The notes under the pieces were generated by a model. That model did not search any database and was not told the DNA's origin. It saw nothing but the letters and a program-made list of their open reading frames with translations. From sequence record MK250029.1: 64,000 bases of DNA; one strand, written 5' to 3'. The position numbers and the translations under genes were made by a program. Below, in pieces: positions 4,957 through 57,188 of this stretch (its first letter is position 1; every line of letters starts with the position of its first letter).

Positions 4957-5696
4957 AAGTCATATATAATTTATTTTAAACTTATCTATTAAACTTTCAA
5001 TTCTATACAAAATTTCAAAAGTACTTGAATAATACTCAGTCTAATAGAAATATCATTATCTAATTTTAATTGTAATAGATATAAATTAAAAAATAATTTT
5101 TCAAATATAAATATCTATCTTTAACTTAATATACTATATTAATTATACTACAATATTTATAAAAAGTTTATATTTACTAATAAATTTTAAAAAATAATTT
5201 AATGAATAAAAAATATTTACATTTCCGAAAGACTTACCTTACTAAATTCATTAAATTATTAAAAATTATAAATAAATTTTTTACATANNNNNNNNNNNNN
5301 NNNNNNNNNNNNNNNNNNNNNNNNNNNNNNNNNNNNNTGAGTTCTGAGAAAAAGTCTACATTTTTTCTAAATATTTTTAAATTTCATTAAAAATAATTTA
5401 TAACTAATTAATATTCAATAAATTAAATAAATTAAATAAAATATTTTTCATATAAATTAATATAAAATAAAAATTCAGATCTAAATTATATAAATTTAAA
5501 TCTGAATTAAAAATAAAATTTTTTCATATATTATATATAATATCTATCTCAANNNNNNNNNNNNNNNNNNNNNNNNNNNNGAGCTTTCTAGAAAAAGTCT
5601 ACATTTTTGAGAATTATTTTTTAACTATTTTTAATGATATTTTTTTAAACTTTACAAATAATATCTAATATAACTATAGAAAATTAATTTAATTTA

Positions 5697-6236
5697 ATGG
5701 ATATGGATTTTAATACTAAAGTATAGTTTACGAGAACACGTAATGTAAAGATGCCTAATAGAGCAAATAAGCATGATGCAGGTACAGATTTTTTTGTGCC
5801 TTATTATAATTAGGAGTTTCTTGTTGATTTGATTAAGAAGAATACAGGTAATAAGATTTTCTATAAGATTGAGAATGATGATTTGTTTATCACTATTCCG
5901 GCTGGTGAACAGGTAATGATTCCATCAGGAATCAAGGTATGGATTAATGATAAGAGAACATATCTTCAGGCAACTAATAAATCTGGTGTTGCTTCAAAGT
6001 ATCATCTTGATGTTATGGCAAATACTATTGATGCAGATTATCAGGGAGAAGTTCATATTAATCTTTGTAATAATGGTAATACAGACATTACCGTTCAGAC
6101 CGGTCAGAAACTTGTACAGTTTATTCATCAGATTTATCTTGATACTGATTGGGTTGAAATGGATGAGAAAGAATATGATGAGATTGAAGTATCAGACAGA
6201 GGTGATGGAATGGCAGGTTCTACCGGAACATTCTAA
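5697..6236 (+). CDS. dut: Trimeric dUTPase; TAG at codons 10 and 39
   Basis: Read-through restores motif 1 (PNRANKHDAGTDF); also KSG, NTIDADYQGE, QKLVQ, RGDGMAGSTG. Confidence 0.92.
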
Positions 6237-6259
6237 AAAAATAAAATATATTTAAGAAT

Positions 6260-6781
6260 ATGAATAAGCTACGTAATTTCGAGTTTGAATATAATGGAGA
6301 AAAATATTGGTATTCACGTTCTATAACAGTTGCAACTTGTATTTTCTGTAAGGATTCAGACGGAAATTGGTGTGCATTAATTAATAAAAGAGGTAAAGGT
6401 TGTCCGACTGCTGTTGGAAAGTGGAATGTGCCTGCAGGATATTTGGATCATGATGAAGATATATGTTCATGCGGTATGAGAGAAACATATGAAGAAACTG
6501 GTCTTATTATTCCAAGGGTATTAATGAATTTTTACGCAATTAATTCAGTTCCAGATACAAAACGACAAAATGTAAATGTGATATATTATGTTGTTCTTCC
6601 TGGTGTTATTGATGATTATCAGTTAACAACTGAACATTCAGAACCAGATGAAGTAGATGATATAATGTTTATACCAATATCAATGATATTTACATCTGAT
6701 ATACAGATTGCATTTAATAATGATAACATTTTATTGGACGTATATAATAAGATTATCATTAATCATAATAAAAGTAAGTAA
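6260..6781 (+). CDS. Nudix hydrolase
   Basis: Nudix box GYLDHDEDICSCGMRETYEETG. Confidence 0.88.
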   Translation: MNKLRNFEFEYNGEKYWYSRSITVATCIFCKDSDGNWCALINKRGKGCPTAVGKWNVPAGYLDHDEDICSCGMRETYEETGLIIPRVLMNFYAINSVPDTKRQNVNVIYYVVLPGVIDDYQLTTEHSEPDEVDDIMFIPISMIFTSDIQIAFNNDNILLDVYNKIIINHNKSK

Positions 6782-6842: not shown

Positions 6843-6850
6843 TATCTTTG
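6843..6850 (+). promoter_or_regulatory. Bacteroidota-type -7 promoter element TATCTTTG (copies at 6843, 9645, 10040, 29340, 39709)
   Basis: Matches the TAnnTTTG consensus; four of five copies share the extended GTGTATCTTTG; all are intergenic, upstream of small genes. Confidence 0.65.
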
Positions 6851-6907
6851 TAAAAGTAAACAAAATAGTTTTTTACTATTATAATAATTTATAATTGATA
6901 AAAAATA

Positions 6908-7306
6908 ATGGTTATGGGACTTAAATTTAAAAATCAAAATCCAATTTCTGATAATAATACATTAAAAGTATATTTCTGTACAGAGGATGTACATAATGAT
7001 CCGGATGATGCATGGTCAGATGAACTTATTACTATAGTATATCATATTGCGGCAGCAACAGTAGATGATGCGATTGATATTTGGATAGAAAAATATTCTG
7101 ATATTACATGGAAAGATAAAACAAGAGAGGATTTTAACAGACAAGATTATTGGGATGCATGGATAGATCATAACAGGGAAAAAACTTATAATGTATACTT
7201 AAATAAAATTTTAAAATTAAAAAGGAAACTAAGTAAATCAATGATAGAAATTCCAGGTATTTTTTATATTGGTAAACCTTGTGTACTTTTAAAATCAAAA
7301 CTATGA
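6908..7306 (+). CDS. Hypothetical protein
   Basis: 132-aa ORF after promoter motifs. Confidence 0.6.
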   Translation: MVMGLKFKNQNPISDNNTLKVYFCTEDVHNDPDDAWSDELITIVYHIAAATVDDAIDIWIEKYSDITWKDKTREDFNRQDYWDAWIDHNREKTYNVYLNKILKLKRKLSKSMIEIPGIFYIGKPCVLLKSKL

Positions 7307-8358: not shown

Positions 8359-8505
8359 AAATAAAAAAATATTTGAAAAAAATTATTTAAAAACTAAACT
8401 TTTTAAATGATATTCAATATTATATATGTTACTTGTGTGAATATCAAGTAATTAATTTTTAATTTTAATATTTTAGTTAATAACAAATTTTAAATTTTTT
8501 AAAGT

Positions 8506-9555
8506 ATGAAGAAGTTTATTTTTATGCTTATTGCAATGTTTACATTTGCAATTGGTTCAATTAACGCACAGACACAGAATGACTATGCAGGTTCTAGTAA
8601 GTTTACTGATAATGTTTCAGTAACACTTCAGGGTGGTGTTCTTACATCATTTGATAATTTTTATAGTGGTCATACTGCAATGGCACCTATTGTTTTGATT
8701 GGTGCAGATAAGTATGTAACTCCTTGGTTGGGATTTGGTGTAGAAGGTCGTACACTTATTGGTACAGGTCATGGTAGTTATAATACATATACTGCTTTTG
8801 ATTATGTTAATGTAAGTGGTCTTGCAAAGGTTAATCTTGCTAATGCATTTAAGTTTGATGGAACACGTAAGTTCTTTGAGCCTGTTGTTTATACAGGTCT
8901 TGGTTGGGGACATCAGACAGCAAGTTATGGAGATAATCACAATAATTGGATGACTTATCGTGCAGGTGCAGAGTTTAATTTTAATCTTGGTGAGGATCGT
9001 GCATGGGGTATTGTTGTAAATCCATCAGTTGTTTGGAATGACATTGACAATGGTAAGCTTGTAAAGAAGAACGGTAGTTTTGAGATTACAGCAGGTGTTG
9101 TTTATCGTTTCAAGAATTCAAATGGAAAGCGTTCATTTGCTAAGGCACATCTTTATGATGCAGCAGAGGTTGCAGCTCTTAACAAGAAGATTAATGAGCT
9201 TGAATCACGTGAACCTGTTGTAATTGAGAAGATTGTAGAGAAGCCTGTTGCAACTAATACTGTTGCAGGTGTTGGCTCAAATGTGTTTATTGCTCCATTT
9301 AAGTTTAATAGTTCTGAGCTTTCTGATAAGTGTAAGTCAGTACTTGATAATATTGCAGAGGGCACAACAGTTGTAATTGATGCATATGCATCTTCTGAGC
9401 CAAAGAGTTCTGCAAAGTATAATACAAAGCTTTCTGTAGAGCGTGCAAATGCAGTTAAGAAGTATCTTGAGTCACGTGGCGTTAAGGTAACAGATACCAC
9501 AGGACATGGTATGGATGATGATTTTGGTCGTGTTGCTATTGTTACTGTAAAGTAA
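8506..9555 (+). CDS. ompA: OmpA-family outer membrane protein
   Basis: Signal peptide, beta-barrel-type alternating strands, C-terminal FKFNSSEL...YAS...NTKLSVERANAVKKYL. Confidence 0.88.
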   Translation: MKKFIFMLIAMFTFAIGSINAQTQNDYAGSSKFTDNVSVTLQGGVLTSFDNFYSGHTAMAPIVLIGADKYVTPWLGFGVEGRTLIGTGHGSYNTYTAFDYVNVSGLAKVNLANAFKFDGTRKFFEPVVYTGLGWGHQTASYGDNHNNWMTYRAGAEFNFNLGEDRAWGIVVNPSVVWNDIDNGKLVKKNGSFEITAGVVYRFKNSNGKRSFAKAHLYDAAEVAALNKKINELESREPVVIEKIVEKPVATNTVAGVGSNVFIAPFKFNSSELSDKCKSVLDNIAEGTTVVIDAYASSEPKSSAKYNTKLSVERANAVKKYLESRGVKVTDTTGHGMDDDFGRVAIVTVK

Positions 9556-9628: not shown

Positions 9629-9688
9629 TTTTATAATAATTGTGTATCTTTGTAATATAATATATTGTTTAAACAGAAGTTATTTAAT

Positions 9689-10015
9689 ATGATAAAATTT
9701 AAAAATCAAACATCAAATAATACTATATCATCAGATGTAATTAAAGATTTAATAGATACATTACCAACTACAAAATCACCAATATTTAAAACGAAGAATT
9801 TTACTATTCGTGATTTACGTATTGGAAGTATTATACGTATTCATTTATGTAATGATTCCCGTGGTGATAAAGGATATGTTACAACAGAAATTGTTGCATT
9901 ATTTAATTCAATGGGACAACATATATATAATTCTAATGCAGATTTTGCAATTGTATATGAAGGTATAGTATGGACTGCAAATTGTACACAAATAGATAAA
10001 ATAATTTCGTATTAA
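9689..10015 (+). CDS. Hypothetical protein
   Basis: ORF after the TATCTTTG element; ATG 9689 preferred to TTG 9665. Confidence 0.6.
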   Translation: MIKFKNQTSNNTISSDVIKDLIDTLPTTKSPIFKTKNFTIRDLRIGSIIRIHLCNDSRGDKGYVTTEIVALFNSMGQHIYNSNADFAIVYEGIVWTANCTQIDKIISY

Positions 10016-10076
10016 TTTTTTTATTCAAAAATAAATGTGTATCTTTGAGATGTAACAAATAAAACAATAGAAAATT

Positions 10077-10502
10077 ATGAATAAGATTTTTATAACATTG
10101 ATTTTTAGTTTTGTATGTATGTTTGCTAATGCAACATCACATAATAAATTACATATCGGATATGATAAAGATATGTGTAGCGATTATTATGTTCTTTCTA
10201 TAAAGAAAGATACTGTATACGTTACATATTATGAATATGAACAAGGTACATTTGTATATTATGATGGTTTAAATGATTTTGCATCATCACGCCTTACGCC
10301 ATTGATGAATAAGTTGGTTAATATTCATACAACTAAAGTTAATAATATAAAGAATGAATATGAAAATCTTCTTATTGATATTAATGTAGTAAATCCTACA
10401 TATCATAAATGTAAAAACAATTATATTGCATTTTATGAAATGGGTATATTATATAATAAAATAGGAAATCTTATTGATAAAGTAAAAAAAATTACAAAAT
10501 AA
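10077..10502 (+). CDS. Hypothetical exported protein
   Basis: N-terminal signal-peptide-like MNKIFITLIFSFVCMFANA. Confidence 0.6.
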   Translation: MNKIFITLIFSFVCMFANATSHNKLHIGYDKDMCSDYYVLSIKKDTVYVTYYEYEQGTFVYYDGLNDFASSRLTPLMNKLVNIHTTKVNNIKNEYENLLIDINVVNPTYHKCKNNYIAFYEMGILYNKIGNLIDKVKKITK

Positions 10503-12823: not shown

Positions 12824-12854
12824 AATAAATATATAAAAAGAAAAATTACCTAAT

Positions 12855-15044
12855 ATGCCAAAAATAAAGAATTATCAAAAGTTAGATAAAAATTCTGTAT
12901 TTAGTAATTGTAGTTATGCATAGTCAGCAGGTGTTTATTATAATTAGGAAGGTTTTTCTAATGTAACAAATAAAATTTAGGATATGGGAACATATAATCC
13001 TGATAAGTATATATTAGGAAATATAACTAAACCAAATAAGAAGACATTTGTTAATTATGATAAACATGAAATAATTAATAAAGGAAATAATACAAAAATT
13101 AACATTAATAATATAAAGAATAATAAGGAAACATATGCGTATGTTTCTGGTATTATGGTTCCTACTATTGAAGCTGAAGTAAAACCTATTACAGAAATAT
13201 TAAAAGAAACTGAAGATAATATTACAAATTCAAAAAATATAGTTATTAATAGTAACGAATTTAAAGAATTACATAAAGAAGAAAAAGTTATTAATAATAA
13301 GAATATTAAACAAGTAAAAGGTAAATCATCTGTAAATTTATTTTCTAAAGTATTTGAAAATAAACAATAGAATGATATTAATGATGATAATGTAATATAT
13401 TTAAATGGTTGGGTATGGTTAAATAGATTTAATAAACCATATGCACATAATTTTGGTGATGATATAAATTTTTCATTTTTGACAGAAATAACAGGTAAGA
13501 AACATAAGAAATACGATAATGAATTTGTAACAAATTATTTAATGATTGGAAGTATTTTTATTGATAAGTATATAAATGATTTTACAGAAGTATGGGGTAG
13601 TGGAATGTTAAGACATTAGGTATTATATAAAAAACCAAATAAAGTATATGCAGTTAGAGGTCCAAAAACACGAGAGATCTGTTTAGCATCAAATATAGAT
13701 TGTCCGGAAATATATGGAGATCCTGCATTATTAATACCATATTACTATTATCCTTATGTAATGAAAAAATATAAATTAGGAATTATTCCACATCATTCTC
13801 ATATTAATTCAGATATATTAAATAAATTTAAAGATAATGAAAATATTAAGATTATTAATTTTACAAAATATAATGATTGGAAAGATATAATTAAAGAAAT
13901 TGTAGAATGTGAATTTATTATATCTGAAAGTTTACATGGTTTGATTATATCAGAAGCATTTAGAATTCCTAATATATGGATTTCATTAGGAAATAATATA
14001 GGATAGAATTTGAAATATGAAGATTTCTTTTTATCTATTAATAAACCATTATATGATTCATATTTAGTAAATGAAGATACAACATATGAAGATTTATTAA
14101 AATTAAAAGATAATTATAATTCAACATTTGAAATAGATTTACAAAAATTAGTTGATGCTTGCCCTATAAAATTAAAGAATTTAAATTTATATAATCAGAT
14201 TAAACCATATACAGGAAAAGTATTATTATGCTGTATAGGAAAAATGGAAAATAATTATATACGAGAGTTTGTAGAATATTATAAAACAATAGGATTTGAT
14301 AATATATGTTTATATGATAATAATGATATAGATGGAGAACATTTTGAGGATGTAATAGGTGATTATATAGATTCAGGGTTTGTAATATTAAAAGATTGGA
14401 GAGGAAAAGAATTAGCATAGATTCCATCATATACAGATTGTTATAATACATATAAAGATGAATATGATTGGATAGCATATTTTGATATAGATGAATTTTT
14501 AGATTTAGATTGTAATAATATAAAAGAATTCTTATCAGATGATATGTATAATGATAGAGGTATAAATTGTATAAGAGTTTGTTGGAAACAATTTACTGAT
14601 TCTAATATTATTAAAACAGATGGAAATTATTCAGTAACTAAATTTAATCAATATATACCATTAGATAAAGATAAATATTGTGCATAGACAAAAATTATAA
14701 TTAAAACGTAGTTAGATAATATCATATTTGATTCACCACATGGTGTTATATATAATAAAGATAATCATATTACATGTGTAAATACAAATGGTGATTTATG
14801 TACAAATGATATAATTATAAATAATCCTACATGGGAAAATGCATGTTTAAATCATTATCGTTTTAGAACAATAGAGGAATATGTATTAAATAAAATGGTA
14901 AGATTATGGCCAACAACATATATGAATGGTGGAAAAACGGGATTAAATTTAAATTTATTTTTTAGATATAATACATTTTCATAGGAAAAATTAAATTTTG
15001 CAAATTATCTTTTAGATAAATTTAATATAAGTAGAAATGAATAA
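12855..15044 (+). CDS. Fusion of an unknown N-terminal domain, a polysaccharide pyruvyl transferase and a GT92/GT2-like glycosyltransferase, 729 aa, 10 TAG
   Basis: One frame with TAG read-through; HNFGD, IGS, WGSG, AVRGPKT, YGDPALL, LGIIPH, SLHGLI; then CCIGKMEN..IREFVEYY, LYDNND, WIAYFDIDEFL, LNHY. Confidence 0.8.
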
Positions 15045-15326: not shown

Positions 15327-15428
15327 ATGAAAATAAAGAGCAATTAAATATTTTTATATAGTGCAAAATTATATAGAATATTAATTGCTCTTTTTTGATA
15401 AATATAAAAAATAACATGTTATATTTAA

Positions 15429-16394
15429 ATGAATAAAGATATACGTCCACCTCAGCATGTATTACATGTTTTCGATCCTAATAGAAAATGTAGACCACAT
15501 GATGAAGTTGAGTTTATAGAAGGTCGTTATGTTGATATTGTAAATGCAAAGAATAAGGATCCACATACTTTGTATTTCGGTAAATCAAAGAATTCTGAGC
15601 TCTTAACAGGTATTTTTTTAGGTGATCTTGAACTTACTTCAAAAGTAAAAGATGTATCTCTTGTTTCTGTTGATGGCGTTGTAACATTATCTATTAAATA
15701 TGTTAATTCTGCTGGTAAACTTGCAACTGTAAAAACAAATTTACCTTCATAGAAACTTGTTGAAGATATTAAAAAATTATTAGAATCTTTTGATACAAGT
15801 ATTCTTGATAAAATTAACACATCATTCAGTGATGTATATGATAGATTAAATGTTATCGATTCATCAATAGTTGATATTAATAATCATCTTACAGTTATAG
15901 ATACTTCTGTAGGTGAATTAACAACAAGAGTAGATACATTAGATACATCATTATTAGGATTAATAGATGAACTTGATCATGGTAAGTATAATTATACAAT
16001 ACATGAAGATCCTGGAACATATGCAAACGGTTTCAAAAAAACATTTACTTTATTTAAAGGTGAAGAAGAACAAAAAGATTCATCTAAGATTGAAGTAACT
16101 GATATGGTGTTGAAATAGTTAAATTATGTTAAAGATAATAATGTAATTGAAGCAAAAGTTTGGCCAGAACCTATTAAGTCAATCGATTTAATCGGTGATG
16201 TTCTTACATTAAAAGATGGTACAGTTATTAAAGATGTTATTTCATCTCTTGATAAAGATTTAATTAAAACTGTATCATTAGACATGAAAGGTTATGACGA
16301 ACATATTAATGACTTCATGAATACTGATTCATCTATTAATGACAGATTAACTTTTGTAGAAAACCAATTGAAATGGGAAGAGTTAGATAACTAA
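15429..16394 (+). CDS. Putative virion fibre/structural protein 1, 321 aa, 2 TAG
   Basis: Read-through of TAG 15750; heptad-like LDTS repeats; ends LKWEELDN. Confidence 0.6.
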
Positions 16395-16441
16395 TTATAA
16401 AAAAGAGAATAAATAATAAAATTAAATCTATTAAATTTAAT

Positions 16442-18043
16442 ATGAATAAAAATATGGTTTATGGTGCTAATGAAGCAACTTCTTTAACTGATAAAGTTGC
16501 AGATTTTACAAAGGGTAAAAACATTCACTTTGGTTCTGGTGCATTTGAAGAATAGAAAGTTGTTGCTATTGCAACAGCAGCTGAATCTGATGCAAAGGTT
16601 CGTTTCGTATATGATGCAACAGGTGATTCTGGTATGGTATTTGTTGGTAATCAACTTGCATCTTCTAAGATTCTTGACATTACAACAAATAAAGTAGCAA
16701 AGAAACATTTTGATCCTGAAACTGGTAATTATGTAGAATCAACTACAGAAAAAGTTGCAACTAAGGTAACAGTTACATGGTTCGGTTCTCAAGAAGATCC
16801 TGCTGATAATGTTGTAAAGACAAAGGTTTGGGAAACTGTATTTGATGTTATTGATACAGATACAGTAAAAGCAATGATTGATAAAGCTTCAGCAGATTTA
16901 AAAAAATCAGTTGATGATTTAAAAACAAAACATGAAGCAGACGTTTTACGTTTAGATACATCAGTTAACGGCATTGAGACACTTCTTAAGAGCGATGTAG
17001 TTTCAGCTGACACTGGTAGTGCACTTACAGTAACTCCTACTTCTGCTGATGCAACAGGTTATAAGACTTATAAGGTTGCAGTTAACGTAGATGATGCAGA
17101 AGGTTCAACTATTAAGGTTGTAGATAATAAGATTAAGATTGCAAAGTATGCAATTAAGCAGGTTGCTGCGGATTCTATGGAAAAAGATGCAGATACTAAT
17201 GAAACAAAGTATGCATCTGAATATCAGTTAATGATGACTGATGCTGATGGTGTTACAAAGGCAGTTGGTGATAAGATTAATATTGCAAAAGACTTCTTAG
17301 TAACTAAGGCACATGTATGTACATTTAAGTATGCAAAAGTTGAAACAACAACAAATCCAGATACACATGAAGTAACAGTAACAAATAAAGTTGAAATTGT
17401 ATATGGTACTGCTTCAGATCAGTGGGGATAGACATCAACAGTAAATTATGGTGATGAAGTAAAATCAGAAGCAATGCTTCCATATTCAATAAATCAAGAT
17501 GGTACAGTTGAACAAGCACGTCTTGGTTTCGGTATTAAGTATGGTCATTCATATTTACACTTAGTTATCAATACTAAGCCAACTGATACAAAAGCTGCTA
17601 GACATGATGATGTTTATCTTGATTTCACAGAAATCTTTACAACATTCAAGGGTGATGATAAATTCATTACAGTTCAGAATGGTGTTGTTTCTTTGAATAT
17701 TGACGCAGTTTCAACTGCAGTTGATACTAAACTTAAGGTTAATGAGACATTCACAGAACTTAAAGCAAAAGATACAGAAATTGAAGGTCGTCTTGATGGA
17801 TTAGACACATCAGTTAGTGCTATCGAAGATTCTTATGTAAAGGATGCATCTCTTGAATCACCAAAAGCAGGTAATGAACAGTTTAATACTTTAAAGATTA
17901 CTAACAGTAAGGATGGTGCTGAAAGTGTTGTTACTGTAGATGTTGCAAATGAAAAATATTATGCAGGATTAAATACAGCATTAAATACACTTACAGAAAA
18001 TGATAAACATCTTTCTGCACTTCTTACATGGGAAGAACTCTAA
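16442..18043 (+). CDS. Putative virion fibre/structural protein 2, 533 aa, 2 TAG
   Basis: Joins track ORFs 16634-17431 and 17474-18043; T/D/V/A-rich; ends LTWEEL. Confidence 0.65.
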
Positions 18044-18145
18044 TTAATTTTTAATTAACTTTAATAATATAATGGGATAACTGATAATAATTCAATTATC
18101 CCATTTTTTAGATAAATAAAATAAAATATAAACTTTATTAATAAT

Positions 18146-20089
18146 ATGGCTATTACTATTAAAAAGTCAATGATTAATGGTGCTCCAGTTATTTTTGGCG
18201 CTCCTGCTGATGCAGATACTGCAAAAGGTGTAGAAGTAAAATTTGGTTATGGTACACTTGAGAATGTACTTGCAAAAGTTGGTACTGCAGATGACGGCGT
18301 AATCTATTTCGGTTATGATGATGCTAAATCAACTGGTGCAATTGTTTCACGCGGTAAACTTGTTTCTTCAAAAATTCTTGATATTACAACAACTGCTGCT
18401 GTAACAGGAGAAGGTGATAAAATAATAAAAGAAGCATAGATTGTAATTTCTTATATTGATACTGATAAGTCTGTTAAAACATTAGAAATTCCTGTTTCTG
18501 CTGATGGTAAATTAAAAGATCTTGCTGATAAGATTGAAGCTCTTAAAACATTAGTAGGTACAAAGACAGATACTAAAGATACTGATACAGTATTCGGTGC
18601 AATTGCAAAAGAAACAGATCGTGCAACTACTAAAGAAACTGCAATTTCCGATCTTCTTGGAACAAAGGATGATGATAAAACAAAAGAAACTGCATTTGGT
18701 AAGATTGCTACTGAAGTAGCGCGTGCAACTGATGCAGAAACAGGATTATCAAATAGAATCAAAACTCTTGAAGATAAAAAGTATACAACAGTTAATGCAA
18801 AAGCAGATGGTCATGTAAAAGTTACTGTTTCTGATGATAATGTTGTAACTGTAACAGAAGATGATATTGCGTCTGCTGCACTTCTTGGTACTGTTGATGA
18901 TGCTGTTGGTACTGCAACTGCATTTGGAAAGATTGCTGATGAAACAAAGCGTGCAACTGATGTTGAAGGTAAGTTAGATACTCGTGTAACTAATATTGAA
19001 ACACTTATAGGTGATGCAGAAAAGCCAGATGAAGATAAAGTAATCAATAAAGTAACTGAAGTAATTGATTGGTTCAAAGGCGTTTCTGAAACCGAAAAAG
19101 GTGCAACACTTATTTCTGATGTTGCTGCAAATAAAACAGCTATTGGTACAAAAACTGTAGAAAATACTAATAGCATTTATAAGAGAATTGAAGATCTTGA
19201 AGCAAAGAAACACACAGTAAGTGACGTAGTTGCTGATGCTGGTAAATGTGTATCAGGTATTCATGTTGATGAAAATGGTGCATTAACAATTGATCAAGCT
19301 GAATTATCTGCTGGTAATATTAATGCTACTGCAATTGTAGCAGGTGATGATACTGTTGCAGTTGAAGGTGATAAGGTTGCTTCATAGATTGAAAGTTTAG
19401 CTAAGTCTATTAAGACTGCTACAAAGTCTGCTGATGATGCAATTAAGGCACTTGATGTTACAGATACTGCAGTAGAAGGAAAATATGTTTCTGCTGTTTC
19501 TGAAGAAGATGGTAAGATTACAGTTACACGTGCAGATCTTCCTACACTTTCTGTTAAGACAGGTTCAGAACAATTTGCAGCTGTTAATAACCATGAAGTT
19601 GAAATCAAGACTACTGCATTAAATACTGTTGGACTTACAAAGACTGAAGCCGGTAAATGGCAAGCAGGTACTGCTGATGCAAAATCAACTGGTCTTGCAA
19701 CTGCTGCAGATGTTGCCGCAGAAATCGTATCAGATGAAGAGGTTATTGCAACAGCTCTTAATGATCATGAAAATCGTTTAAAGACAGTAGAAGGTAAAGA
19801 AATTACTGTTTCTTCTGCTAAGTCTGATGTTGCTATTTCTGTTGATGAAGTAAAAGACAGCGATGTTGTTACTACAGCTGCAACTAATTTCAATGTTACT
19901 GGTGGTAAAATTACATTTACTATTCATGATGGTGATAAAGATGTTGCAGAAACAATTACTGCATATACAGAAGATACTGTTAAAGCTCTTGTTGAACTTT
20001 ATGCAAAGGAAAAAGCTCGTGCTGAAGCTGCAGAAGCTGGTCTTGATAAGAGATTAACTTGGGTTGAATTGAATAAACAAGACAAATAA
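18146..20089 (+). CDS. Putative virion fibre/structural protein 3, 647 aa, 2 TAG
   Basis: Continuous frame with TAG read-through; repeated TAFGKIA.E..RAT..E coiled-coil units; ends LTWVELNKQDK. Confidence 0.65.
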
Positions 20090-42694: not shown

Positions 42695-42782
42695 AAATAT
42701 ACAAAAATATATATTTATTTAAACTTTTTATTGTTTTAATAATATATGAATATATAACATATTAATTTTAAAGATATTATAA

Positions 42783-43904: not shown

Positions 43905-43909
43905 ATAGT

Positions 43910-44314
43910 ATGGGATTGTTTTTAATGGAAGCAGAACCAAAGAAAGCAGAACTTACTACAAATAAGGAACAAGAGCAAGAAGCATATATTGAGCCTTCTG
44001 TTGAATTAACAAAACAGGATGCAAAAAATAATGCTAAAGCTCTTGTAAAAAAGAAGTTTGTTGTTGGTAAGAAATATATGCTTAGACAGAAATCTGTTTG
44101 TGGTTCTAGAGAGATTATAAAGAAATATGTATGTAAGAAATTTATTTATACAGTAAAAGATGAACTTCTTAATATACTTATTCTTAAGCAGGTAGAAGGA
44201 CCAAAAGGAACAATTTTTACATTAAATCGTAATGATTGTAAGCGTTATCATATTAAATATGAACCAGGTCTTCAAGTATTTTCTATGGAATTTAATTGGA
44301 TTCCATGTAAGTAA
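43910..44314 (+). CDS. Hypothetical protein
   Basis: 134-aa ORF. Confidence 0.6.
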   Translation: MGLFLMEAEPKKAELTTNKEQEQEAYIEPSVELTKQDAKNNAKALVKKKFVVGKKYMLRQKSVCGSREIIKKYVCKKFIYTVKDELLNILILKQVEGPKGTIFTLNRNDCKRYHIKYEPGLQVFSMEFNWIPCK

Positions 44315-44407
44315 AAAAATAAATTGAAATAATATAGACTTTATTTAAATTATAGAGTAATATATTTACAATTAAGTTAATCAAATAACAAATAAAGAAA
44401 ATAATTT

Positions 44408-44848
44408 ATGTCAAAAAATAAATTTATTAAGCTTCATTCAAAAGAAGATAATAGTGTTATTATTGCAAGAATTTCAAAGATTAGTCTTGTAACTACAGAT
44501 AATGATTATTCTGGTAAAATGACAACTGTATATTTTGATGATGAAAATATTGATTCAATTACAGTTAATGAAACACCAGAGAAGATTTATCAAAATATTG
44601 TAGAGTTGGATAATACAGATTTTTTGAAACTTCATTCAAGTGATGATAATGCAGTTATGATTGTAAACACAGAGATTATTTCTGTTATTTCACAATCAGA
44701 AGAGGATGGAAAGAATGTAACTACAATGTATTTCAATAATGAATCTATTGAATCAGCTTCATTTAATGAATCTCCTGAACGTATTTATAAGATGATGGAG
44801 ATTACTAATAATGATGTGGTTACATCAGATAATAATGAAACTAAGTAA
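44408..44848 (+). CDS. Protein with two tandem FlbD-like repeats
   Basis: F.KLHS.-D...I....IS......T..YF......V/F.E.PE.IY occurs twice. Confidence 0.55.
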   Translation: MSKNKFIKLHSKEDNSVIIARISKISLVTTDNDYSGKMTTVYFDDENIDSITVNETPEKIYQNIVELDNTDFLKLHSSDDNAVMIVNTEIISVISQSEEDGKNVTTMYFNNESIESASFNESPERIYKMMEITNNDVVTSDNNETK

Positions 44849-45537
44849 TTATAGTTAAAGATATACGTTTATAAAAAATAGTAGTATAACTGAATCTATA
44901 GGCTAAACCAATATGTTTTTATAAACATTCCCTTTATTAGATAAGTAGCAAATATATTAATAATGAGAATATAGCTATGAATGTATATATGTTTACAATT
45001 ATAAATAGAATAATTTAGATATAATATAGTAAAAATTATAAATAAAGTAACATATATATTTCTAATAATTTTTATGAATCTAATAAAAACATGAATTAGA
45101 TACTATTTATTAGTTACTTCAGTTTATTATGAAGGTATTATTGAAACTTTAATTTAATAGTACGATGATATTATACCCTCGAAAGTTAATTTGAAGATTG
45201 TGAAATAATATATTGGAATTGAAAATGATAAGAATATTATTTATAAAGAATATTACATTGTAATATTTAATATCGATATTATAATTTGAAAATGATACGA
45301 AAATATATTATGGATCAGTTGGATGATTAATGAGTACAGAATGTCCCTGTATTGTGGGAGGTTATTTTAAAGTGGAGATTTTATTGGAATTTTAAATTTT
45401 GAATAATTATTAAAAACATACTATTAATTTTTAAAGGATATAACCCTAAAGGTTATATCCTTTTTTATTTAAAAATAAGTTAAACAATTAACATATATTT
45501 GAGTATAATAATTAAACAAAAATTGATTTTTTTAAAT

Positions 45538-47577
45538 ATGCAAAAAGGTAATATTGGAGTTACTAGTTAGGATATTTTTCCATTAATCAAGAAATTTATG
45601 TATAATGATCAGGATATTTTTATCCGTGAGATCGTAAGTAATGCAGTTGACGCATCAGAGAAGTTAATTAAAGTTATTAGTGCAAATGAGTATACAGCAA
45701 ATCCAGATGATTTAAAAGTTACAGTTACTATTAATCATGAAGATAATACTATTACTGTTTCTGATATGGGTATTGGTATGACTGCTGATGAAATAGAAAA
45801 GTACATTAATCAGATTGCATTTTCAGGAGCAAATGACTTCTTAGAGAAATATAAGGATACACAGATTATTGGTCATTTTGGACTTGGATTTTATTCAAGC
45901 TTTATGGTAAGTTCAAAAGTTGAAATTGTATCAAAGTCATATAAAGAGAATTCAAAAGCATGTAGATGGACATGTGAAGGAACTACAGAGTTTACACTTA
46001 AGGATGATGATAAAGAATCTGTAGGTACCGATGTAATTATGCATATTTCTGATGAATATAAGGAGTATGTAAATGAAAGTAAACTTATGGAACTTTTAAA
46101 GAAGTACGCAGAATATTTACCTATTCAAATTTATCTTAAAGATGTTCCTGCACCAACTACTGATTCATCTACCGGTGAAGTTACATATCCAGAATCACAT
46201 GAAACAAAAATTACACGAGATGAACCATTGTGGTTAAAATCTGCATCAGAACTTAAAGATGAAGATTATATTAAGTTCTATAAGGAAACATTCCCTAATA
46301 GACCTGAACCACTTTTCTGGATTCATATTAATATTGATACACCGTTTACATTTAAGGGAATTCTTTATTTCCCTGCATTTGATCAGAAACATCCTATTTT
46401 TGAGCGTAAGCATCTTAATTTGTATTGTAATCGTGTATTTGTGACAGATGATGTAGATGGAGTATTACCAGATTATTTGAGTCTTCTTCATGGTGTAATT
46501 GACTCTCCTGATATTCCATTGAATGTTTCTCGTTCAGTTCTTCAAAATGATGCTAATGTTAAGAAGATTAGTTCACATATTACAAATAAGGTTATGAGTT
46601 CACTTCGTACACTTATGAAGAAAGATAGAGAAACATATGAGAAAAAGTGGGAAACAATTAAAACCTTCATTAATCTAGGCGTTGTAACAGAACCTAATAT
46701 TTTTGATAAAGCAAAGGATATTATTCTTCTTGTTGATACTGATAATAAGATGTATACTTTTGATGAATATTATGATAAAGTATCAGAAACACAGAAAGAT
46801 AAAGATGGTAAAATTGTATATTTGTATACATATGATACTGCTACACAATATACTTATATCGATGCTTTAAAGAAATACGGTTATAATATTCTGCTGTTTA
46901 ATAGTCAATATGGAGCATTTGAAGTACATACATTTGAAATGAAATTACAAGAAAAGAATGTAACATTTAAACGTATTGATGCAGATGTACCAGAAAACCT
47001 TATTAAGAAAGAAGAAGATACAACAAAGAAAGAAAAACCTGTATCTGAGAATATCAAGAGTATGTTGGTATCTATGTTTGATTGTATTGAGCTAAATCTT
47101 CCTAAAATTACACATCAGTATATTGTTCAGCAAGATGGTAAAGATGCACTGCCTATTACTATTGTTGCTGATGAGTTCTTCCGTCGTATGAAGGAAATGT
47201 CAATGCTTAATAATGCTGGTATGTATTTGGAAAATAATGCATCTATTAAAATTATTATTAATGCAGATTCTAAAGTTGTAAAGAAGATTATTAAGATTGC
47301 AGAAAAAGAAATTGGTCAGCAAATTAATGATATTAATGAAAAAGTTAAAGATATTAATACAAGATTGGAAGCTGCTGATACAGATGATGCAAAGAATTCT
47401 ATTAAAAAAGAACTTGATAACATTATTGCAGAGAAAAAGGAAATTATTAATAAACATGCACATGCAGATAGTCATATTCATGAATTAATTGATATTGGTT
47501 TGTTACAGTATGGTTTATTATCAGGTGAAGATTTGGCAGCATTTGTTAAGAGATCTATAAAGATGATTGAAAAGTAA
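45538..47577 (+). CDS. htpG: Hsp90 chaperone HtpG; TAG at codon 11
   Basis: MQKGNIGVTS(Q)DIFPLIKKF resembles the Bacteroidota HtpG start; EIVSNAVDA, DMGIGM, IGHFGLGFYS, PLNVSR. Confidence 0.95.
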
Positions 47578-47702
47578 TTCAATATATAAAAGAGAGTATG
47601 TTTTGTAAATAACTACTCTCTTTTTACTTTTTACAAAAGTAGACAAATAATAAATATTAATATATAAGAAATATATTAACAAATTAAAATTAAATTAACA
47701 AA

Positions 47703-47963
47703 ATGTATCGGTATCATAATCCCTTAAAGAATTTTAATCCATTTGTGATAACAAGTGTATTTGTATTATTTTTAATTGTAATGTTTACATTTGCAATTCC
47801 TACATTGATAAATGCAGCATCTACAATGATGAATTTTATTGCCATTATTTTTATTTTATTTACAATTTATATATGTATTATTGTAATGAGATATTATAAT
47901 GATTATTATATACGACATTATCAGAAATACAAGGAAGAAAGAGAAAAGAAAATTAAAGATTAA
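47703..47963 (+). CDS. Small two-helix membrane protein
   Basis: Two hydrophobic helices; directly upstream of the SPFH gene. Confidence 0.6.
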   Translation: MYRYHNPLKNFNPFVITSVFVLFLIVMFTFAIPTLINAASTMMNFIAIIFILFTIYICIIVMRYYNDYYIRHYQKYKEEREKKIKD

Positions 47964-48783: not shown

Positions 48784-48908
48784 TTTTTATATTTTAATCT
48801 CTAATAATTTTCATAATTATTAGAGATTTTTTATTTTTATAAAGTAAACAAAAAGTTGTTTATCTAATAATATATATAGATTAAATAACTTTTAAATTAT
48901 AATTAATT

Positions 48909-49103
48909 ATGGATTTTACAATTAAAGGAAATAATAATGAAGTATCAGTTTCTAAGGATACTATTAAAAAGTTGATAGAACTTTTACAGCATGTAGATTG
49001 TACATGTGTATGGTCAGAACATGATAATCAATATATTAAGGTTAATGATATTCCTAATAATATTGTTGATGAACTTATTGTAAAATTGAAATTATCAAAA
49101 TAA
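48909..49103 (+). CDS. Hypothetical protein
   Basis: 64-aa ORF after a TAAAC-N18 promoter. Confidence 0.5.
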   Translation: MDFTIKGNNNEVSVSKDTIKKLIELLQHVDCTCVWSEHDNQYIKVNDIPNNIVDELIVKLKLSK

Positions 49104-51343: not shown

Positions 51344-51479
51344 AATATTTAAGTGCTAATAAAGTTTATTGCAAAACTTTATTAGCATTTTTTTGTATAA
51401 TAATTAATTAATATTTTGATATTTCATAGTATCAAAGAATAAATAAAATATCTAAAATAAAATAGAAAGAAAACTAAAT

Positions 51480-54400
51480 ATGAAGGTAACAAAACGTGAT
51501 GGTAGTTTTGAGAATTATAGTGTTTAGACAGTTAAACGTGCAGTTAGAGAAGCGTTTAAGTCAACAAAGACTAAATACTCAAAAGACACAATTTCGAATA
51601 TTGTAAGTTCTATTACGCCATATGATGGCATTCCTGTAGAAGAAATACAGGATCAGATAGAAACAAGTTTGTATTCTCATGATCAGCCTAAAGTTGCAAA
51701 AGAATTTATTCTTTATCGCAATAAGAAGAAGGAAATCAGAGAATGGGTTGCTAATAAAGAAGCATTTATTGAAAGATATAAAAATGCATCAAATACTGCA
51801 AATAGTACAATTGATGATAATTCTAACGTATCATCTAAGAACATCGGTGTATTAAATGCAGAAATTCATAAAGGTGATAATATTCTTGTAAGTAGAGGAA
51901 TGATTACAAGAAAATTAAAAGATTTATTCCCTGATTTTAAAGCAAAACAATATCAAAAAGATTTAAAAAATCATATTATCTATAAGAATGATGAATCAAG
52001 TTTTGCTGGTGCTATAAGTCCTTATTGTGTTAGTGTATCTATGTATCCATTTCTTAATCATGGATTGGAAAAGATTGGAGGTTTATCATGTCATCCACAA
52101 AATCTTGATTCCTATTGTGGTATGTATGTAAATCTTGTATTTGCAGTTGCAGCACAATTTGCAGGAGCAGTAGCAACATCAGAATTCTTGGTATATTTTG
52201 ATTATTTTGCACGAAAGGAATTTGGAGATGATTACTATTTGCATAGTAAAGAATTCTATAAGATTGGTCCAAAATATCGTAAGTTACTTAATGAATCTAA
52301 TTACTGGTGTAAAGATGTAGATACACTTAGAAAACATGATTTTGGTACAGATGAATTAAATAAATTGAGAGATGAACTTGTTTATAATTCGGAACGACCA
52401 TTATCTGATGAAGAACTTAAAGAATATGAAACAGAACTTTCTAAATATGATGTAGAAGGATCAATAAAAGATTTTACAAATCCTATTAAGATTGGTGATG
52501 GTACAAGAACTATTGGTTCATGTATACAACAATTCTTCCAACAAGTAGTGTATTCAATTAACCAACCCGCGGCATCCAGAGGATTATAGTCAGCATAAAC
52601 TAAAATAAATTAAAAATTACATAATCCTATATGTAATTTTACATATCTGAAATTATGTCTAATTATAGATATTTTACAAAAGATAGAGATTGGTTATATG
52701 AAAATTATGTTATTAAAGGATTAACACGAGAATAGTGTGCTAAAGAAGGAAATACAACATTAGCAAATATTAAAGAATATTTAAGAAAATGGAATATTGA
52801 AAAATCTAAATTAATAATTAAAAAAGAGGATTTAATAAATTATGTTAATAATGGATTAACAACGAAAGAAATTTCAGAAATATATAAATGTCATAAAGGT
52901 ACTATTAATAGATATTTTAAAAAATATAATATAAAAAATACTAATTATGAAATTTATGAACAATATGATGATACAAATGATTAGGAAATAATAAAATTAT
53001 ATAATGATGGTAAATCTACAGTAGAAATAAGTAAAATATTTAACTGTTCAGCAACTTCCATCAGAAGTCATTTAAAACATAATGGAATTAAAAGACGTAC
53101 TTTTGTCGAATCTATGTGGAATTATCATAAAAAAGAAATACCAGAAGATTTTAATGATTATAAAAAATTATATAATTTATATATTGAATAGTCAATATCA
53201 AAAGCGGAATTAGCACGGAGATATAATTGTACAATAGCTGTAATTAATAGAGTATTAAATAATTTAAATATTACTAATATTCCATATACAACAGATACTA
53301 GAAGATTAGGTAATAAAATAAGAACATATTTTAATCGATTAGTTCCTAAAGTTATAGAAAGAGATCATAATACTTGTTAGTTATGTGGATGCCATGAAAA
53401 TCTTCAAGTTCATCATATAGTTCCATTTAAAATATTATTTCATAATTTATTATCAGAACATCCAGAATTAAATCCTACTGATAATTTTGATGAATTATTT
53501 AATTTAGCAATAAAAAATAAAGAACTTAATAACATAGATAATCTTATAACATATTGTAAAAATTGTCACATGTATAAAATACATAATTTTGGTAATAACT
53601 AAAGTATAAGAGAAATTACATGTGCTGACGTTAATAAACACCTTGAATTGCGGGAAGTCCCTTAGAGCTTTATCTACAGCATATCATGGGAACATAGATA
53701 GTAGCAGATAGTATAACGACTATTAGATTGTAAAAACGATAAAGATTGGGTAATCATACGCAGCTAATTATCCTAAAGGATAAAAGTTCAACGACTATCG
53801 AACACTTTAAAAAGTTAGTAGAGTACATAACAAGTGTTATGGAAGTGTAGGTGCAAATTTAAGAAAATTAAATTTGATGATATAGTCTAAACGGTTTAAC
53901 AAACCCTTTTAACGTGAAATTCGTTAATCGTCTATGGAAATCATAGAGCAGTTACAAACAGTAACGTACATAAAGTAACGATTTATGTAGAAGTAAAAAT
54001 GTTGTAAATTTCTCTTATTTTGATAAGCCTTTCTTTGAAGGTATGTTTGGGGAATTTGTATTTCCAGATGAAGAAGGTACAAGACCTTGTTGGGAAAGTG
54101 TTTCATGGTTGCAGAAAGATTTCATGATTTGGTTTAACAAAGAGCGTCTTCGTACTATAATCACTTTCCCTGTTGAAAGTTTTGCATTGGTATATAAGGA
54201 TGGAAAGTTTGTAGATGAAGATTCTGCAGATTTTGTTGCAGAAGAATATTCTCGTGGTCATTCATTCTTTACTTATATGTCAGATACTGTTGATTCATTA
54301 TCAAGCTGCTGTTTCGATGGTGATACACCATTTATGTTTGTAGAACCTCTTAATATGGAAGAGCATGGTGGTAATAATGCATATATGGTTTCAACTATTA

Positions 54401-55842
54401 AAGATGCATATGAAAAATATAAAGATGATATAATTAATGTATATCATATGAATTTTAATGGTACTACAGGTAAATGTACAGGTGAATGGGTAAATGCAAA
54501 ATTTGTAAAAGCACAAGCTGTTCAGGAAGTACGAATTTATTTTAAACCAGATGATTTCAATCCAGATGAGTCAAGGAATGTAATGAGAGTTACGCCGGAT
54601 CATATATTCCCTGTTATTGATGATAATGGATTTATTACAGATAAAAATGCATATTTGTTACAGACTGGAGATCAACTTATTTTTGAATATGCACAATATA
54701 TGGGATTATTTAGAGATGAATTCCCTGATAGAGATCAAGATTTAGTAAAACGTGCTATTTCAAAAGTTGAAATTGTAAATCTTGATGAGCCAAAGGATTA
54801 TTATTGTGTAGAGTTATGTGATAAAAATATTGAACCATACTTTTTGTTACCTAATGGAAATATTACACATAACTGTCGCCTTAAGAATAAGATTCAAACA
54901 AAGGAATTTAATTTTACAAATGGAAATCTCGGAATTCAAACCGGGTCAAAATCTGTAATAACATTAAATCTTAGTCGTATAACACAAGATTGGTTTAATA
55001 GTGTTAAGAAAACAGGTGTAACAAAAGAAAATGTAGAAGAACATTATGATGAATTGTGTCATTATTTTGGTGATATTCTTGATAGAGTATACAAATATCA
55101 TACTGCATATAATGAACTTCTATGGGATATGTATGATGCTGGTTTGCTTCCGGTATATAAAGCTGGATTTATTAGTTTGAATAAGCAATATTTAACAATT
55201 GGATTAAATGGTCTTAATCAAATGGCAGAATTTTTAGGAATTACATGCAATATAAATCCTCATTATGAAAAATTATGTCAAACAATATTTGGATATATTA
55301 AGCAGAAGAATCAAGAAGCTGCAGGTATGTTTAACGGACACAAGCTCACGTTTAATACCGAGTGCGTACCAGCGGAAAGTCTTGCAATAAAAAATTATAA
55401 TTGGGATAAAGAAGATGGATATTGGGTAAGTGATGATACAAATCTTTATGCATCTTATATTTTTAAACCAAATGACAAGAGCTTATCAATTTTCGATAAA
55501 ATTACATTACATGGTCGTGATTATATCGGAGATTTCTTAGATGGTGGTTCTGCGGCTCATCTTAATTTATCAGAGCATTTATCTAAGAAACAAATAAAAC
55601 ATATCATGCAATTTGCAGCACAGGTAGGATGTCAGTATTGGACATTTAATGTACCTAATTGTAAGTGTGAAGATTGCGGATATATATCAAAAACTCCATT
55701 TGATAAGTGTCCAAAATGTGGATCAGTTCATATAAGTTTATATGACCGTATCATTGGATATTTAACTAAAATTTCGAACTGGTCAGATGGACGTCAACAA
55801 GAACAAAAGACACGTGTTTATCTACATAGTGAAAATATTTAA
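51480..55842 (+). CDS. nrdD: Anaerobic ribonucleoside-triphosphate reductase, join(51480..52596,54002..55842); 985 aa including a 188-aa intein; 2 TAG
   Basis: ATP cone MKVTKRDG; spliced junction RGL(Q)SA-F-VNFSYFDKPFF; SSC/CRL; CEDC...CPKC; glycyl-radical loop RIIGYL. Confidence 0.93.
52597..54001 (+). mobile_element. Group I intron in nrdD, 1405 nt
   Basis: 5' exon GTCAGCAT pairs with IGS GTGCTGAC (53622-53629), ending in U.G; P AATTGCGGGAA 53646; R GTTCAACGACTA 53786; S GATATAGTCT near 53879; terminal G 54001; removal restores the frame. Confidence 0.9.
52655..53602 (+). CDS. Intron-encoded HNH homing endonuclease with N-terminal HTH repeats, 315 aa, 4 TAG (not in the ORF track)
   Basis: C(Q)LCG...LQVHHI...NLITYCKNCH...IH; several T.EIS.I..C...TI HTH-like units. 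Confidence 0.85.
54310..54873 (+). mobile_element. Mini-intein in NrdD, 188 aa, no endonuclease domain
   Basis: CFDGDT...VTPDHIF...YYCVEL...NGNITHN/C, inserted in SSC|CRL. Confidence 0.9.
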
Positions 55843-57061
55843 GTTTTTATAACCTATTTTATTTTTAATAAGTTATAACATATACTTTATGTTATAACTT
55901 ATTTTTATTTAATAGTATTAAAGGTTTATCCTATTATTCAATTAGATAAATATTATAAATGAAAATATAATATATGAATTATAATAAAATTTATAATAAT
56001 ATTATTAATAATGCAAAAAATCGAAATAATATAAACAATCAATACTTTGAAATACATCATATTATCCCTAAATGTATAGGAGGAACTGATGATGATAAAA
56101 ATTTAGTAAAACTTACATTACGTGAACATTTTATATGTCATGAATTATTAGTTAAAATATATTCAGATATACAATCATTAAAATGCGCATTATGGATTAT
56201 TTGTATTACGACATTAGAAGCAAAAAAAGAATATATAACAAATAATATAAAATATAAAAATAATAAATTACCTATTAATCATAGAGTACAACATTTTTTA
56301 AATGATTTTGAAAAACATATTAATATATCTTCAAGAGATTATGAATATTGTAGAACATTATATTATATAGCAACAAAAGGGAAAAAACGAACTGTTGAGC
56401 AATGTAAAAAAATTTCAGATGCGACAAAGCATGCTATGAAAGATCCATCTAGAGTACAATTAAGAAGAAAAGGTGTATTGGGTAGTAAATTTTATTATGA
56501 TTTAATAACAAATAAATCTTATAAATGGTTTCCGGGAGATCCAGATATTGATTTAAATAAGTATGCGTGGGGTAGAGGAAAGAAAATGAGTTTAAAATCA
56601 AAAACATTAATGTCTGAAAATTTATCAAAATATAAAAAAGTATATTATTATAATGATAATTTAAAATCATCTACATGCTTTTGTAAAGATTAGATAAAAA
56701 TATTACCTGATAGTTGGCATTTAGGAAGAAAATTCGGCGGATATAATAAAATGAAAATATTTATTATACCATTATTAAGAAATGTACATTTTAAATTAGT
56801 ATGTAATTAGCATTTTATTGATAATATATTTTATCATATTAATTTATTAAACAAATAGGAAATAAGTATAGGTATATTAACGATTAATGAAAAAATATTA
56901 AGTGACTTAATACAAAAAAATATTGATATTAATGATGAAAAATATATTACAATAATATATAACAATATATTAAATAATATAAACCAAATTAAAACTATTA
57001 ATAATAGCGTTTATTTAAATAGTGAAAATATTTAAGTTTTTATAACCTATTTTATTTTTAA
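55816..57061 (+). repeat. 53-bp direct repeat (55816-55868 and 57009-57061), 2 mismatches
   Basis: GTTTAT(C/T)TA(C/A)ATAGTGAAAATATTTAAGTTTTTATAACCTATTTTATTTTTAA flanks the HNH gene. Confidence 0.9.
55974..57035 (+). CDS. Free-standing HNH homing endonuclease (T4 Mob-like), 353 aa, 3 TAG
   Basis: EIHHIIPKCIGGTDD..NLVKLTLREHF.CH.LL; NUMOD-like KRTVEQCKKIS; read-through to TAA 57035. Confidence 0.85.
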
Positions 57062-57188
57062 ATTTTAATGATTCCAGTATACCACTACTGGAATCATTTT
57101 TTATTGATTTTTTCTAATAAAAATAGATGTTTTTAATCAACTTTTTATATGTTTTTCTATATAATTTTTAAGAAAAAGATTAAATAGT

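Follow-up and report, generated by a model that had tools for sequence, protein, structure and literature searches.

A candidate middle promoter class, TA(A/G)AC-N18-TATAA(T/A), in Prevotella phage Lak-C1 and the phage sigma factors that may read it

The DNA analyzed here, a window of 64,000 nucleotides from record MK250029.1, is part of the genome of Prevotella phage Lak-C1 (540,217 bp, circular, unannotated). It carries, among others, genes for a dUTPase, a DNA polymerase (polB) in pieces, a DnaB-like helicase, an Hsp90/HtpG protein and NrdD, which are preceded by one bipartite motif, TA(A/G)AC-N18-TATAA(T/A), designated class B. Comparison with the Lak-C1 record revealed 100% identity over the 10 kb tested, and a window position is obtained by subtracting 369,205 from the position in the record; positions below are those of the window unless Lak-C1 is named. 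The window has a GC content of ~25%, and many frames that appear broken become continuous when TAG is read as Gln, among them 12855..15044 (10 TAGs) and 59103..62144 (17 TAGs); this reading is the published genetic code of the Lak phages. For genome-wide work, the Lak-C1 record outside the window was joined to the window itself, with runs of N kept as such, and 592 open reading frames (ORFs) were called with TAG as Gln by a simple caller accepting only ATG starts; 353 oriented upstream regions were used. An N gap (35692-35715) falls within the 5′ end of the DnaB-like helicase ORF (ATG at 35659), where the frame is open across the nominal 24 N and its continuity is not provable. No motif copy in the window touches a run of N.

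A bipartite motif at a single spacing, and two other motif classes

An earlier note on this DNA had listed 15 places at which a sigma70-like TA(A/G)AC-N18-TATAAT motif precedes genes. The motif lies at all 15, position for position, with a poor -10 box (TAATAT) at 44335 and 48845, and with TARAC (R, A or G) replaced by AAAAC at 25926 and by TCAAC at 57137, where the rest of the motif stands. Further sites, absent from that list, were found at 8395, 35605, 41395, 51373 and 5170(-). Class B has about 20 copies in the window and about 90 in the whole Lak-C1 genome; the motif is real. The strict form, TA[AG]AC-N18-TATAAT, occurs nine times in the window, where dinucleotide shuffles of the whole window predict 0.77. 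The 8.8 kb of intergenic DNA (81% AT) contain 8 strict copies for an expectation of 0.18, and none of 300 dinucleotide shuffles gave more than 2; for a relaxed form, 17 copies were counted where 1.7 were expected. Eight of the nine strict sites are on the plus strand within a block of plus-strand genes, and the ninth (5170-5142) is on the minus strand and points toward a minus-strand gene. A strict match at 60585, within a minus-strand ORF, is probably due to chance. Scans of 8-29 nt and 12-24 nt revealed N18 as the sole enriched spacing in the window, and the genome-wide counts were 67 for N18, 2 for N17 and 7 for N19 over a background of ~5.

A dyad search on the 353 upstream regions, independent of the pattern described earlier, yielded two bipartite classes: class A, the strongest, and class B after masking of class A. 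The top dyads after masking (ACTTT-15-TATAA, TAAAC-18-TATAA and TAGAC-18-TATAA) correspond to the motif of the earlier note, so that TARAC-N18-TATAA was recovered de novo as a promoter class. Its profile is tA(A/G)AC(w)(w)t ... aTATAA(t/a). Among 53 class B sites, position 5 of the TARAC box is C in 53 and position 4 is A in 52, position 3 is divided between A (33) and G (20), and the last -10 base, equivalent to -7T, is T in 31 and A in 18; a purine is conserved 5-6 nt past the -10 box. A position weight matrix (PWM) built for class B gave 87 genome-wide matches, compared with ~2 in block shuffles, and 65 of the 87 have a co-oriented ATG no more than 150 nt away, the median TARAC-to-ATG distance being 59.5 nt (interquartile range 54-66). 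Class B thus has the bipartite -35/-10 arrangement of sigma70-family promoters: its two boxes lie a fixed distance apart, ahead of genes and in the same orientation as these. A division into TAAAC and TAGAC subclasses was considered and rejected; there was no covarying position, and TAG density, -10 box and flanks were alike. The two forms number 36 and 35 genome-wide and 11 and 1 in the window. A further bipartite class was also sought, and the dyad search after masking of both A and B gave leftovers of these two only.

Class B is conserved in the related phage Lak-B8, for which 8.4 kb were aligned at 78% DNA identity. Spacers and flanks differ there, while the boxes persist at 41395, 45481 and 47640, as does the TAGAC at 44335; at 47640, the 18-nt spacing is retained in spite of indels. 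Over the Lak-B8 genome, TARAC-N18-TATAAW (W, A or T) gave 83 matches compared with 29 for a reversed control. The crAss-like phage cr113_1 encodes a sigma-W-like factor; its first 50 kb gave neither an AAC-N-TATAA spacing peak nor a strong dyad, a comparison that is uninformative for class B. The alternative that the motif is no promoter, arising by chance in AT-rich DNA or serving as another kind of binding site, draws on a composition of 75-81% AT and on the 321 occurrences of TATAAT alone in the window. Set against the excess over AT-matched shuffles, the single sharp spacing, the agreement of strand with gene orientation, the tight distance to ATG and the conservation in Lak-B, it deserves almost no credence.

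Class A consists of a T-run followed ~17 nt later by TGTATCTTTGTA and is the strongest dyad signal genome-wide, with 55 sites. Its core, TATCTTTG, is invariant and fits the -7 element of the Bacteroidota primary-sigma promoter, whose consensus is TTTG / TAnnTTTG (PMC6847099). In class B, TATAAW is followed by A or T, and the TTTG of the -7 element is absent. As Lak-C1 carries this separate and strongly conserved class with a Bacteroidota -7 box, host-type promoters are used elsewhere in the genome and class B is clearly different from them, in agreement with the proposal that it is foreign to the host primary sigma. Analysis of k-mers and their positions in Lak-C1 revealed class C, RATAAATA-N4-AA, which has no -35 box. 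It precedes 112 genes, including that of the large terminase (17 TAGs), and forms a sharp peak 25-40 nt upstream of the ATG.

Sigma factor genes and a predicted phage-directed transcription

The earlier note had suggested that the phage encodes its own sigma factor for a middle regulon. A search for sigma70-family genes revealed three in Lak-C1, all outside the window: an extracytoplasmic function (ECF)-type sigma of 316 amino acids (aa), an RpoD/RpoS-like sigma of 338 aa and a gp55-like protein of 161 aa. A window ORF, 52655..53602, was also considered; it has weak region 4 matches and was rejected as a multi-helix-turn-helix (HTH) protein with an HNH endonuclease. RNA polymerase (beta, beta′ and T7-type; PF00562, PF00623 and PF00940) was not detected in the 540-kb record, a result that very divergent enzymes could escape and that, for PF00940, comes with a control giving no match in any control genome. 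With sigma genes present and a polymerase undetected, the enzyme is likely to be the host core with a phage sigma. The reading favored here, to which we give a probability of roughly 70%, is that TA(A/G)AC-N18-TATAA(T/A) represents the Lak middle promoters, read by host core RNA polymerase with a phage sigma instead of the host primary sigma. The firing of class B sites is predicted from sequence features.

A different route to the same promoters would be a host primary sigma remodeled by phage proteins, with an activator on TARAC, as in the MotA/AsiA system of T4 middle transcription. The TA that starts the -10 box is common to the host TAnnTTTG box, and the gp55-like sigma together with the T4-late-like class C makes a T4-like scheme conceivable. 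In Lak-C1, nevertheless, MotA/AsiA homologs were not detected (no match to PF09158 and only a sub-threshold match of 12.9 bits to PF09010), the TTTG present almost without exception in Bacteroidota promoters and in phage class A is missing from class B, and two complete sigma genes offer a simpler explanation. Remodeling of the host sigma is accordingly regarded as improbable.

Among the phage sigma factors, the ECF-type protein is TAG-free and carries a ~110-aa acidic N-terminal extension; its top NCBIfam match is SigW, well below the family cut-off. Its sigma2 and sigma4 regions are ~97% identical between Lak-C1 and Lak-B8, and relatives of the sigmas outside the Lak phages are at most 30% identical. 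ECF sigma factors typically recognize a -35 box ending in AC at a rigid spacer and are autoregulated. Two such features are found for class B, namely the AAC core in the -35 box and a cognate promoter before the sigma gene. The ECF-type gene has two sites ahead of its ATG, one of class A at ~1160 nt and one of class B at 43 nt; this arrangement is kept in Lak-B-like contigs, where the spacer of the class B site is changed. With its invariable spacer length and a -10 box whose last base is weak, class B fits an ECF sigma better than a group 1 sigma. On these grounds, and on those of TAG usage and contact residues given below, we lean slightly toward the ECF-type rather than the RpoD-like sigma as the reader of class B. 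Bacteroidota encode many ECF sigmas, and the AC-ending -35 box and rigid spacer would also suit a host alternative sigma of Prevotella. Under that explanation, ~90 phage promoters would hang on a stress-induced host factor, while the phage has an ECF-type sigma of its own with a conserved class B site before it; a host ECF sigma therefore appears most unlikely.

TAG usage, suppressor tRNAs and the choice between sigma factors

TAG codons were counted in the first genes behind each promoter class and compared with length-matched nulls. Class A first genes contain 2 TAGs, where 49 ± 14 were expected (0 of 5000 resamples as low), and 45 of these 47 genes are TAG-free. Class B first genes are average (133 TAGs, 154 expected), and class C first genes are TAG-rich (513 compared with 417 expected, P = 0.026; 30 TAG-free genes compared with 55 expected). 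Two tRNA-CUA (amber suppressor) genes lie in a TAG-free block of Lak-C1. Within 520 nt upstream of tRNA-CUA-2, the only recognizable promoters are two class B sites, at Lak-C1 185922 and 186019, and tRNA-CUA-1 is downstream of tRNA-CUA-2 on the same strand. A further tRNA, with anticodon UUA (Lak-C1 254126-254198, minus strand), would read the TAA stop codon. The gp55-like ORF likewise has a class B site (score 13.2), located 57 nt before its Met34, which would place the gp55-like gene in the middle class. The gradation of TAG from A through B to C, with class B before the suppressor tRNAs and the gp55-like gene, agrees with the middle timing proposed in the earlier note; class B would accordingly fire in the middle phase, as far as the timing can be predicted from these features.

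The observed motif classes (their geometry, position, orientation and conservation), the TAG partition, and the sigma and tRNA genes with their preceding motifs would fit a cascade of three steps. In the first, the host sigma would read class A (T-run ... TGTATCTTTGTA), giving small TAG-free early genes and an operon with the TAG-free ECF-type sigma gene. In the second, the ECF-type sigma would read class B before the genes for dUTPase, the polB pieces, the DnaB-like helicase, NrdD and Hsp90; elsewhere in the genome, class B would drive the ECF sigma gene itself, in a positive feedback, as well as the two tRNA-CUA genes and the gp55-like gene. In the third, TAG would be decoded, and the TAG-containing gp55-like sigma would be made and would read class C, leading to the TAG-rich late genes. 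Promoter classes and in-frame TAGs might interlock in this way: a TAG-free ECF sigma from host-type promoters would activate class B, and class B would supply the suppressor tRNAs and the gp55-like mRNA. As the gp55-like (3-4 TAGs) and RpoD-like (4 TAGs) proteins need TAG decoding, TAG-rich late genes would not be transcribed before they could be translated. That the code change serves as the timer of late transcription is a tentative proposal, to which we give somewhat less than even credence. A recoding model for Lak and crAss-like phages places standard-code genes first and TAG-containing structural and lysis genes late, in a paper silent on both promoters and sigma factors (Borges et al., bioRxiv 10.1101/2021.08.26.457843). 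Compared with that model, the TAG partition here maps onto three promoter classes, with the suppressor tRNAs and sigma genes placed.

The alternative in which the RpoD/RpoS-like sigma reads class B, leaving the ECF-type sigma with a small undetected regulon, bears directly on this choice. When the base after TARAC is counted, the geometry is that of TTGACA-N17-TATAAT, TAGAC matches four of the five bases of TTGAC, and the -10 box is the group 1 consensus. The protein contains regions 2, 3 and 4, and the counterparts of the sigma70 melting residues Y430 and W433 are retained in it. Its sigma70 -35 contacts R584, E585 and R588, however, are replaced by E, T and N, and the R588-equivalent is N in Lak-C1 and L in Lak-B8 despite an unchanged -35 box. 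The 31:18 division between T and A at the last -10 base and a spacer without ±1 tolerance are unlike group 1 promoters, and there is no class B site before its own gene. The gene is the last in an operon (Lak-C1 171538-174618, minus strand) headed by a class A promoter. Since the suppressor tRNAs lie behind class B, class B must first be activated by a sigma whose mRNA can be translated before TAG is decoded, which favors the ECF-type and not the RpoD-like sigma; the latter, with four TAGs (the first at codon 45), could not be made before suppression, and its reading of class B would be a circular dependency. Its mRNA may be made early yet become translatable only after the code switch. An RpoD-like reader of class B is thus considered unlikely.

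Several points weigh against the ECF-type assignment and the reading built on it. ECF -10 boxes are usually of the CGT type, which was not found in class B (TATAA(T/A)), and a TATAAT-like box, typical of group 1-3 sigmas, is untypical of ECF promoters and fits the RpoD-like protein, which is otherwise left without a promoter class. Because the class B site of the ECF sigma gene falls within the ORF before it, the conservation of this site may partly reflect coding constraint, and the ORF starts come from the simple ATG-only caller. The tRNA argument fails if there is an unrecognized tRNA promoter, leaky reading of TAG or a sigma carried in the virion. The RNA data are assembled contigs from animal-gut libraries. 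Contig breaks at ~45378-45489 and 47555-47658 lie beside the class B sites at 45481 and 47640. Assembled contigs do not mark where a transcript begins, and one of them reaches back to 45489, ahead of both the -10 box and the predicted start. Promoter activity is predicted from the DNA.

Lak megaphages are widespread, uncultured gut phages, and the Lak paper mentions sigma factors only in passing and promoters not at all. The three promoter classes lead to a predicted temporal map of ~250 of the ~590 genes, place the amber-suppressor tRNAs and the three sigma genes in one cascade, and make the hypothesis that recoding times the late genes testable. The new element would be a sigma cascade coupled to the TAG code switch. 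In addition, class B and its sigma would together allow orthogonal expression in Bacteroidota, where the primary sigma is expected not to recognize class B.

Other loci and comparison with known systems

Additional features were observed around some of the sites listed in Table 1. At 6841-6885, a class A box (TGTATCTTTGTA) is followed 4 nt on by a strict class B site, both before the TAG-free gene 6908..7306, which possibly has a dual promoter with both early and middle expression. At 21602-21661, two class B promoters stand back to back on opposite strands, with their TARAC boxes 2 nt apart. The polB gene is in pieces: 21694..22527 contains a DNA_pol_B segment and an N-terminal intein splicing domain, 24018..24992 begins with a C-terminal intein splicing domain, and a 378-aa ORF (4 TAGs, with a class C site) and an 80-aa ORF lie between them in another frame. 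The arrangement resembles a split-intein "fractured gene," each half with its own predicted class B promoter. NrdD is also interrupted, with an ATP-cone and NRDD profile positions 30-157 in 51480..52598 and NRDD positions 260-560 in 54043..55842; no promoter motif was found before the second part. The 1.4-kb insert consists of the multi-HTH and HNH endonuclease ORF 52655..53602 (4 TAGs) and 440 nt of relatively GC-rich non-coding DNA, and is possibly a group I intron with a homing endonuclease; an Rfam scan of the window gave no match.

The region 44853-45475 consists of ~600 nt without an ORF of at least 25 aa and ends in a hairpin and T-run at ~45436-45470. The region ranks with the pieces of deepest coverage in two of four RNA libraries (X16 and X17), shows 80% identity to Lak-B8 compared with 61% for an ordinary intergenic region, and has a folding z-score of -3.3, making it a candidate abundant non-coding RNA. 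Outside the window, a repeated element of ~120 nt occurs at Lak-C1 137887(-), 138125(-), 215244(+), 500731(+) and 500976(+), and comprises an AT-rich leader and a predicted transcribed segment of ~45 nt, both conserved, as well as a class B promoter (TAGAC...TATAAT); no ORF follows. Lak-B8 has similar promoter copies, and the repeats possibly form a small RNA family.

Table 1. Predicted promoter sites in the window (window positions) and sigma-family genes of Lak-C1 (positions in the Lak-C1 record)
Feature	Position	Strand	Gene or context	PWM score	Remarks
Class B, TAAAC-N18-TATAAT	5142..5170	-	toward gene 4956..4138	19.1	214 nt from gene
Class B, TAAAC-N18-TATAAC	5646..5674	+	before dUTPase 5697..6236	20.4	
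Class B, strict	6857..6885	+	before 6908..7306		below PWM threshold owing to spacer
Class B, TAAAC-N18-TATTAT	8395..8423	+	before OmpA-domain gene 8506..9555	16.5	
Class B, AAAAC-N18-TATAAA	21602..21630	-	for gene 21597..20872 (-)	20.3	
Class B, strict	21633..21661	+	before first polB piece 21694..22527	22.3	
Class B, TAAAC-N18-TATAAA	23966..23994	+	before second polB piece 24018..24992	18.0	
Class B, AAAAC-N18-TATAAT	25926..25954	+	before M13 peptidase 25988..27910	20.5	
Class B, strict	28668..28696	+	before DUF3310 gene 28727..29287	14.9	
Class B, TAAAC-N18-TAAAAT	30908..30936	+	before 30964..31986	17.1	
Class B, strict	31989..32017	+	before 32054..32932	18.5	
Class B, TAAAC-N18-TATAAA	35605..35633	+	before DnaB-like helicase, ATG 35659	15.0	54 nt before ATG
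Class B, strict	37156..37184	+	before 37224..37715	16.6	
Class B, strict	41395..41423	+	before metallophosphoesterase 41442..42242		CAAAC-N18-TATAAT in Lak-B8
Class B, weak, TAGAC-N18-TAATAT	44335..44363	+	before 44408..44848		TAGAC kept in Lak-B8
Class B, strict	45481..45509	+	before Hsp90/HtpG 45538..47577	19.9	boxes kept in Lak-B8
Class B, TAGAC-N18-TATAAG	47640..47668	+	before 47703..47963	13.1	N18 kept in Lak-B8
Class B, weak, TAAAC-N18-TAATAT	48845..48873	+	before 48909..49103		
Class B, AAAAC-N18-TATAAT	51373..51401	+	before NrdD first part 51480..52598	22.6	
Class B, TCAAC-N18-TATAAT	57137..57165	+	before 57189..57896	23.1	
Class A, -7 box TATCTTTG	6843..6850	+			T-run ~20 nt upstream
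Class A, -7 box	9645..9652	+	before TAG-free gene 9689..10015		
Class A, -7 box	10040..10047	+	before TAG-free gene 10077..10502		
Class A, -7 box	29340..29347	+	before TAG-free genes 29635..30903		
Class A, -7 box	39709..39716	+	before TAG-free block 39750..44848		near-identical in Lak-A1 and Lak-B8
Class C	426..441	-	next minus-strand start downstream, 406 (gene 406..-1528)		0 TAG
Class C	12824..12839	+	before 12855..15044		10 TAG
Class C	15397..15412	+	before 15429..16394		
Class C	16408..16423	+	before 16442..18043		
Class C	18111..18126	+	before 18146..20089		
Class C	22519..22534	+	before 378-aa ORF (22551..) between polB pieces		4 TAG
Class C	55945..55960	+	before 55974..57035		3 TAG
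RpoD/RpoS-like sigma, 338 aa	Lak-C1 171538..172554	-	regions 2, 3 and 4		TAG codons 45, 68, 219 and 315
gp55-like protein, 161 aa	Lak-C1 193275..193760		region 2 only		phrog_234 "late sigma transcription factor," E = 9e-11; 4 TAG
ECF-type sigma, 316 aa	Lak-C1 261944..262894		regions 2 and 4		TAG-free

T4 late promoters (TATAAATA) are read by gp55. In Lak-C1, class C (RATAAATA without a -35 box) and a 161-aa region-2-only protein matching phrog_234 resemble this system; the likeness concerns class C and not class B. The Bacillus subtilis sigma W promoter is TGAAAC-N16-CGTA. Class B resembles such ECF promoters in its AAC-ending -35 box, in its rigid spacing and in the presence of a site before the sigma gene, and differs from them in its TATAA(T/A) -10 box and in a regulon of ~90 promoters rather than a handful. 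The sigma70 promoter TTGACA-N17-TATAAT, a type that the host primary sigma does not use (PMC6847099), has the same geometry with the base after TARAC counted and an identical -10 hexamer. Unlike in the sigma70 promoter, the second -35 position of class B is A and not T, the third is A or G, -7T is weak and the spacer is fixed.

The sigma cascade of the Bacillus phage SPO1 proceeds from host sigma A to gp28 and then to gp33/34. The proposed Lak cascade would be similar in that early promoters are of the host type, an early phage sigma redirects the host core to a bipartite middle class before replication genes, and a further phage sigma serves late promoters. It would differ from SPO1 in its box sequences, in a Bacteroidota host whose primary sigma acts on -33/-7 elements, in a candidate middle sigma of the ECF type, and in a cascade interleaved with a change of the genetic code.

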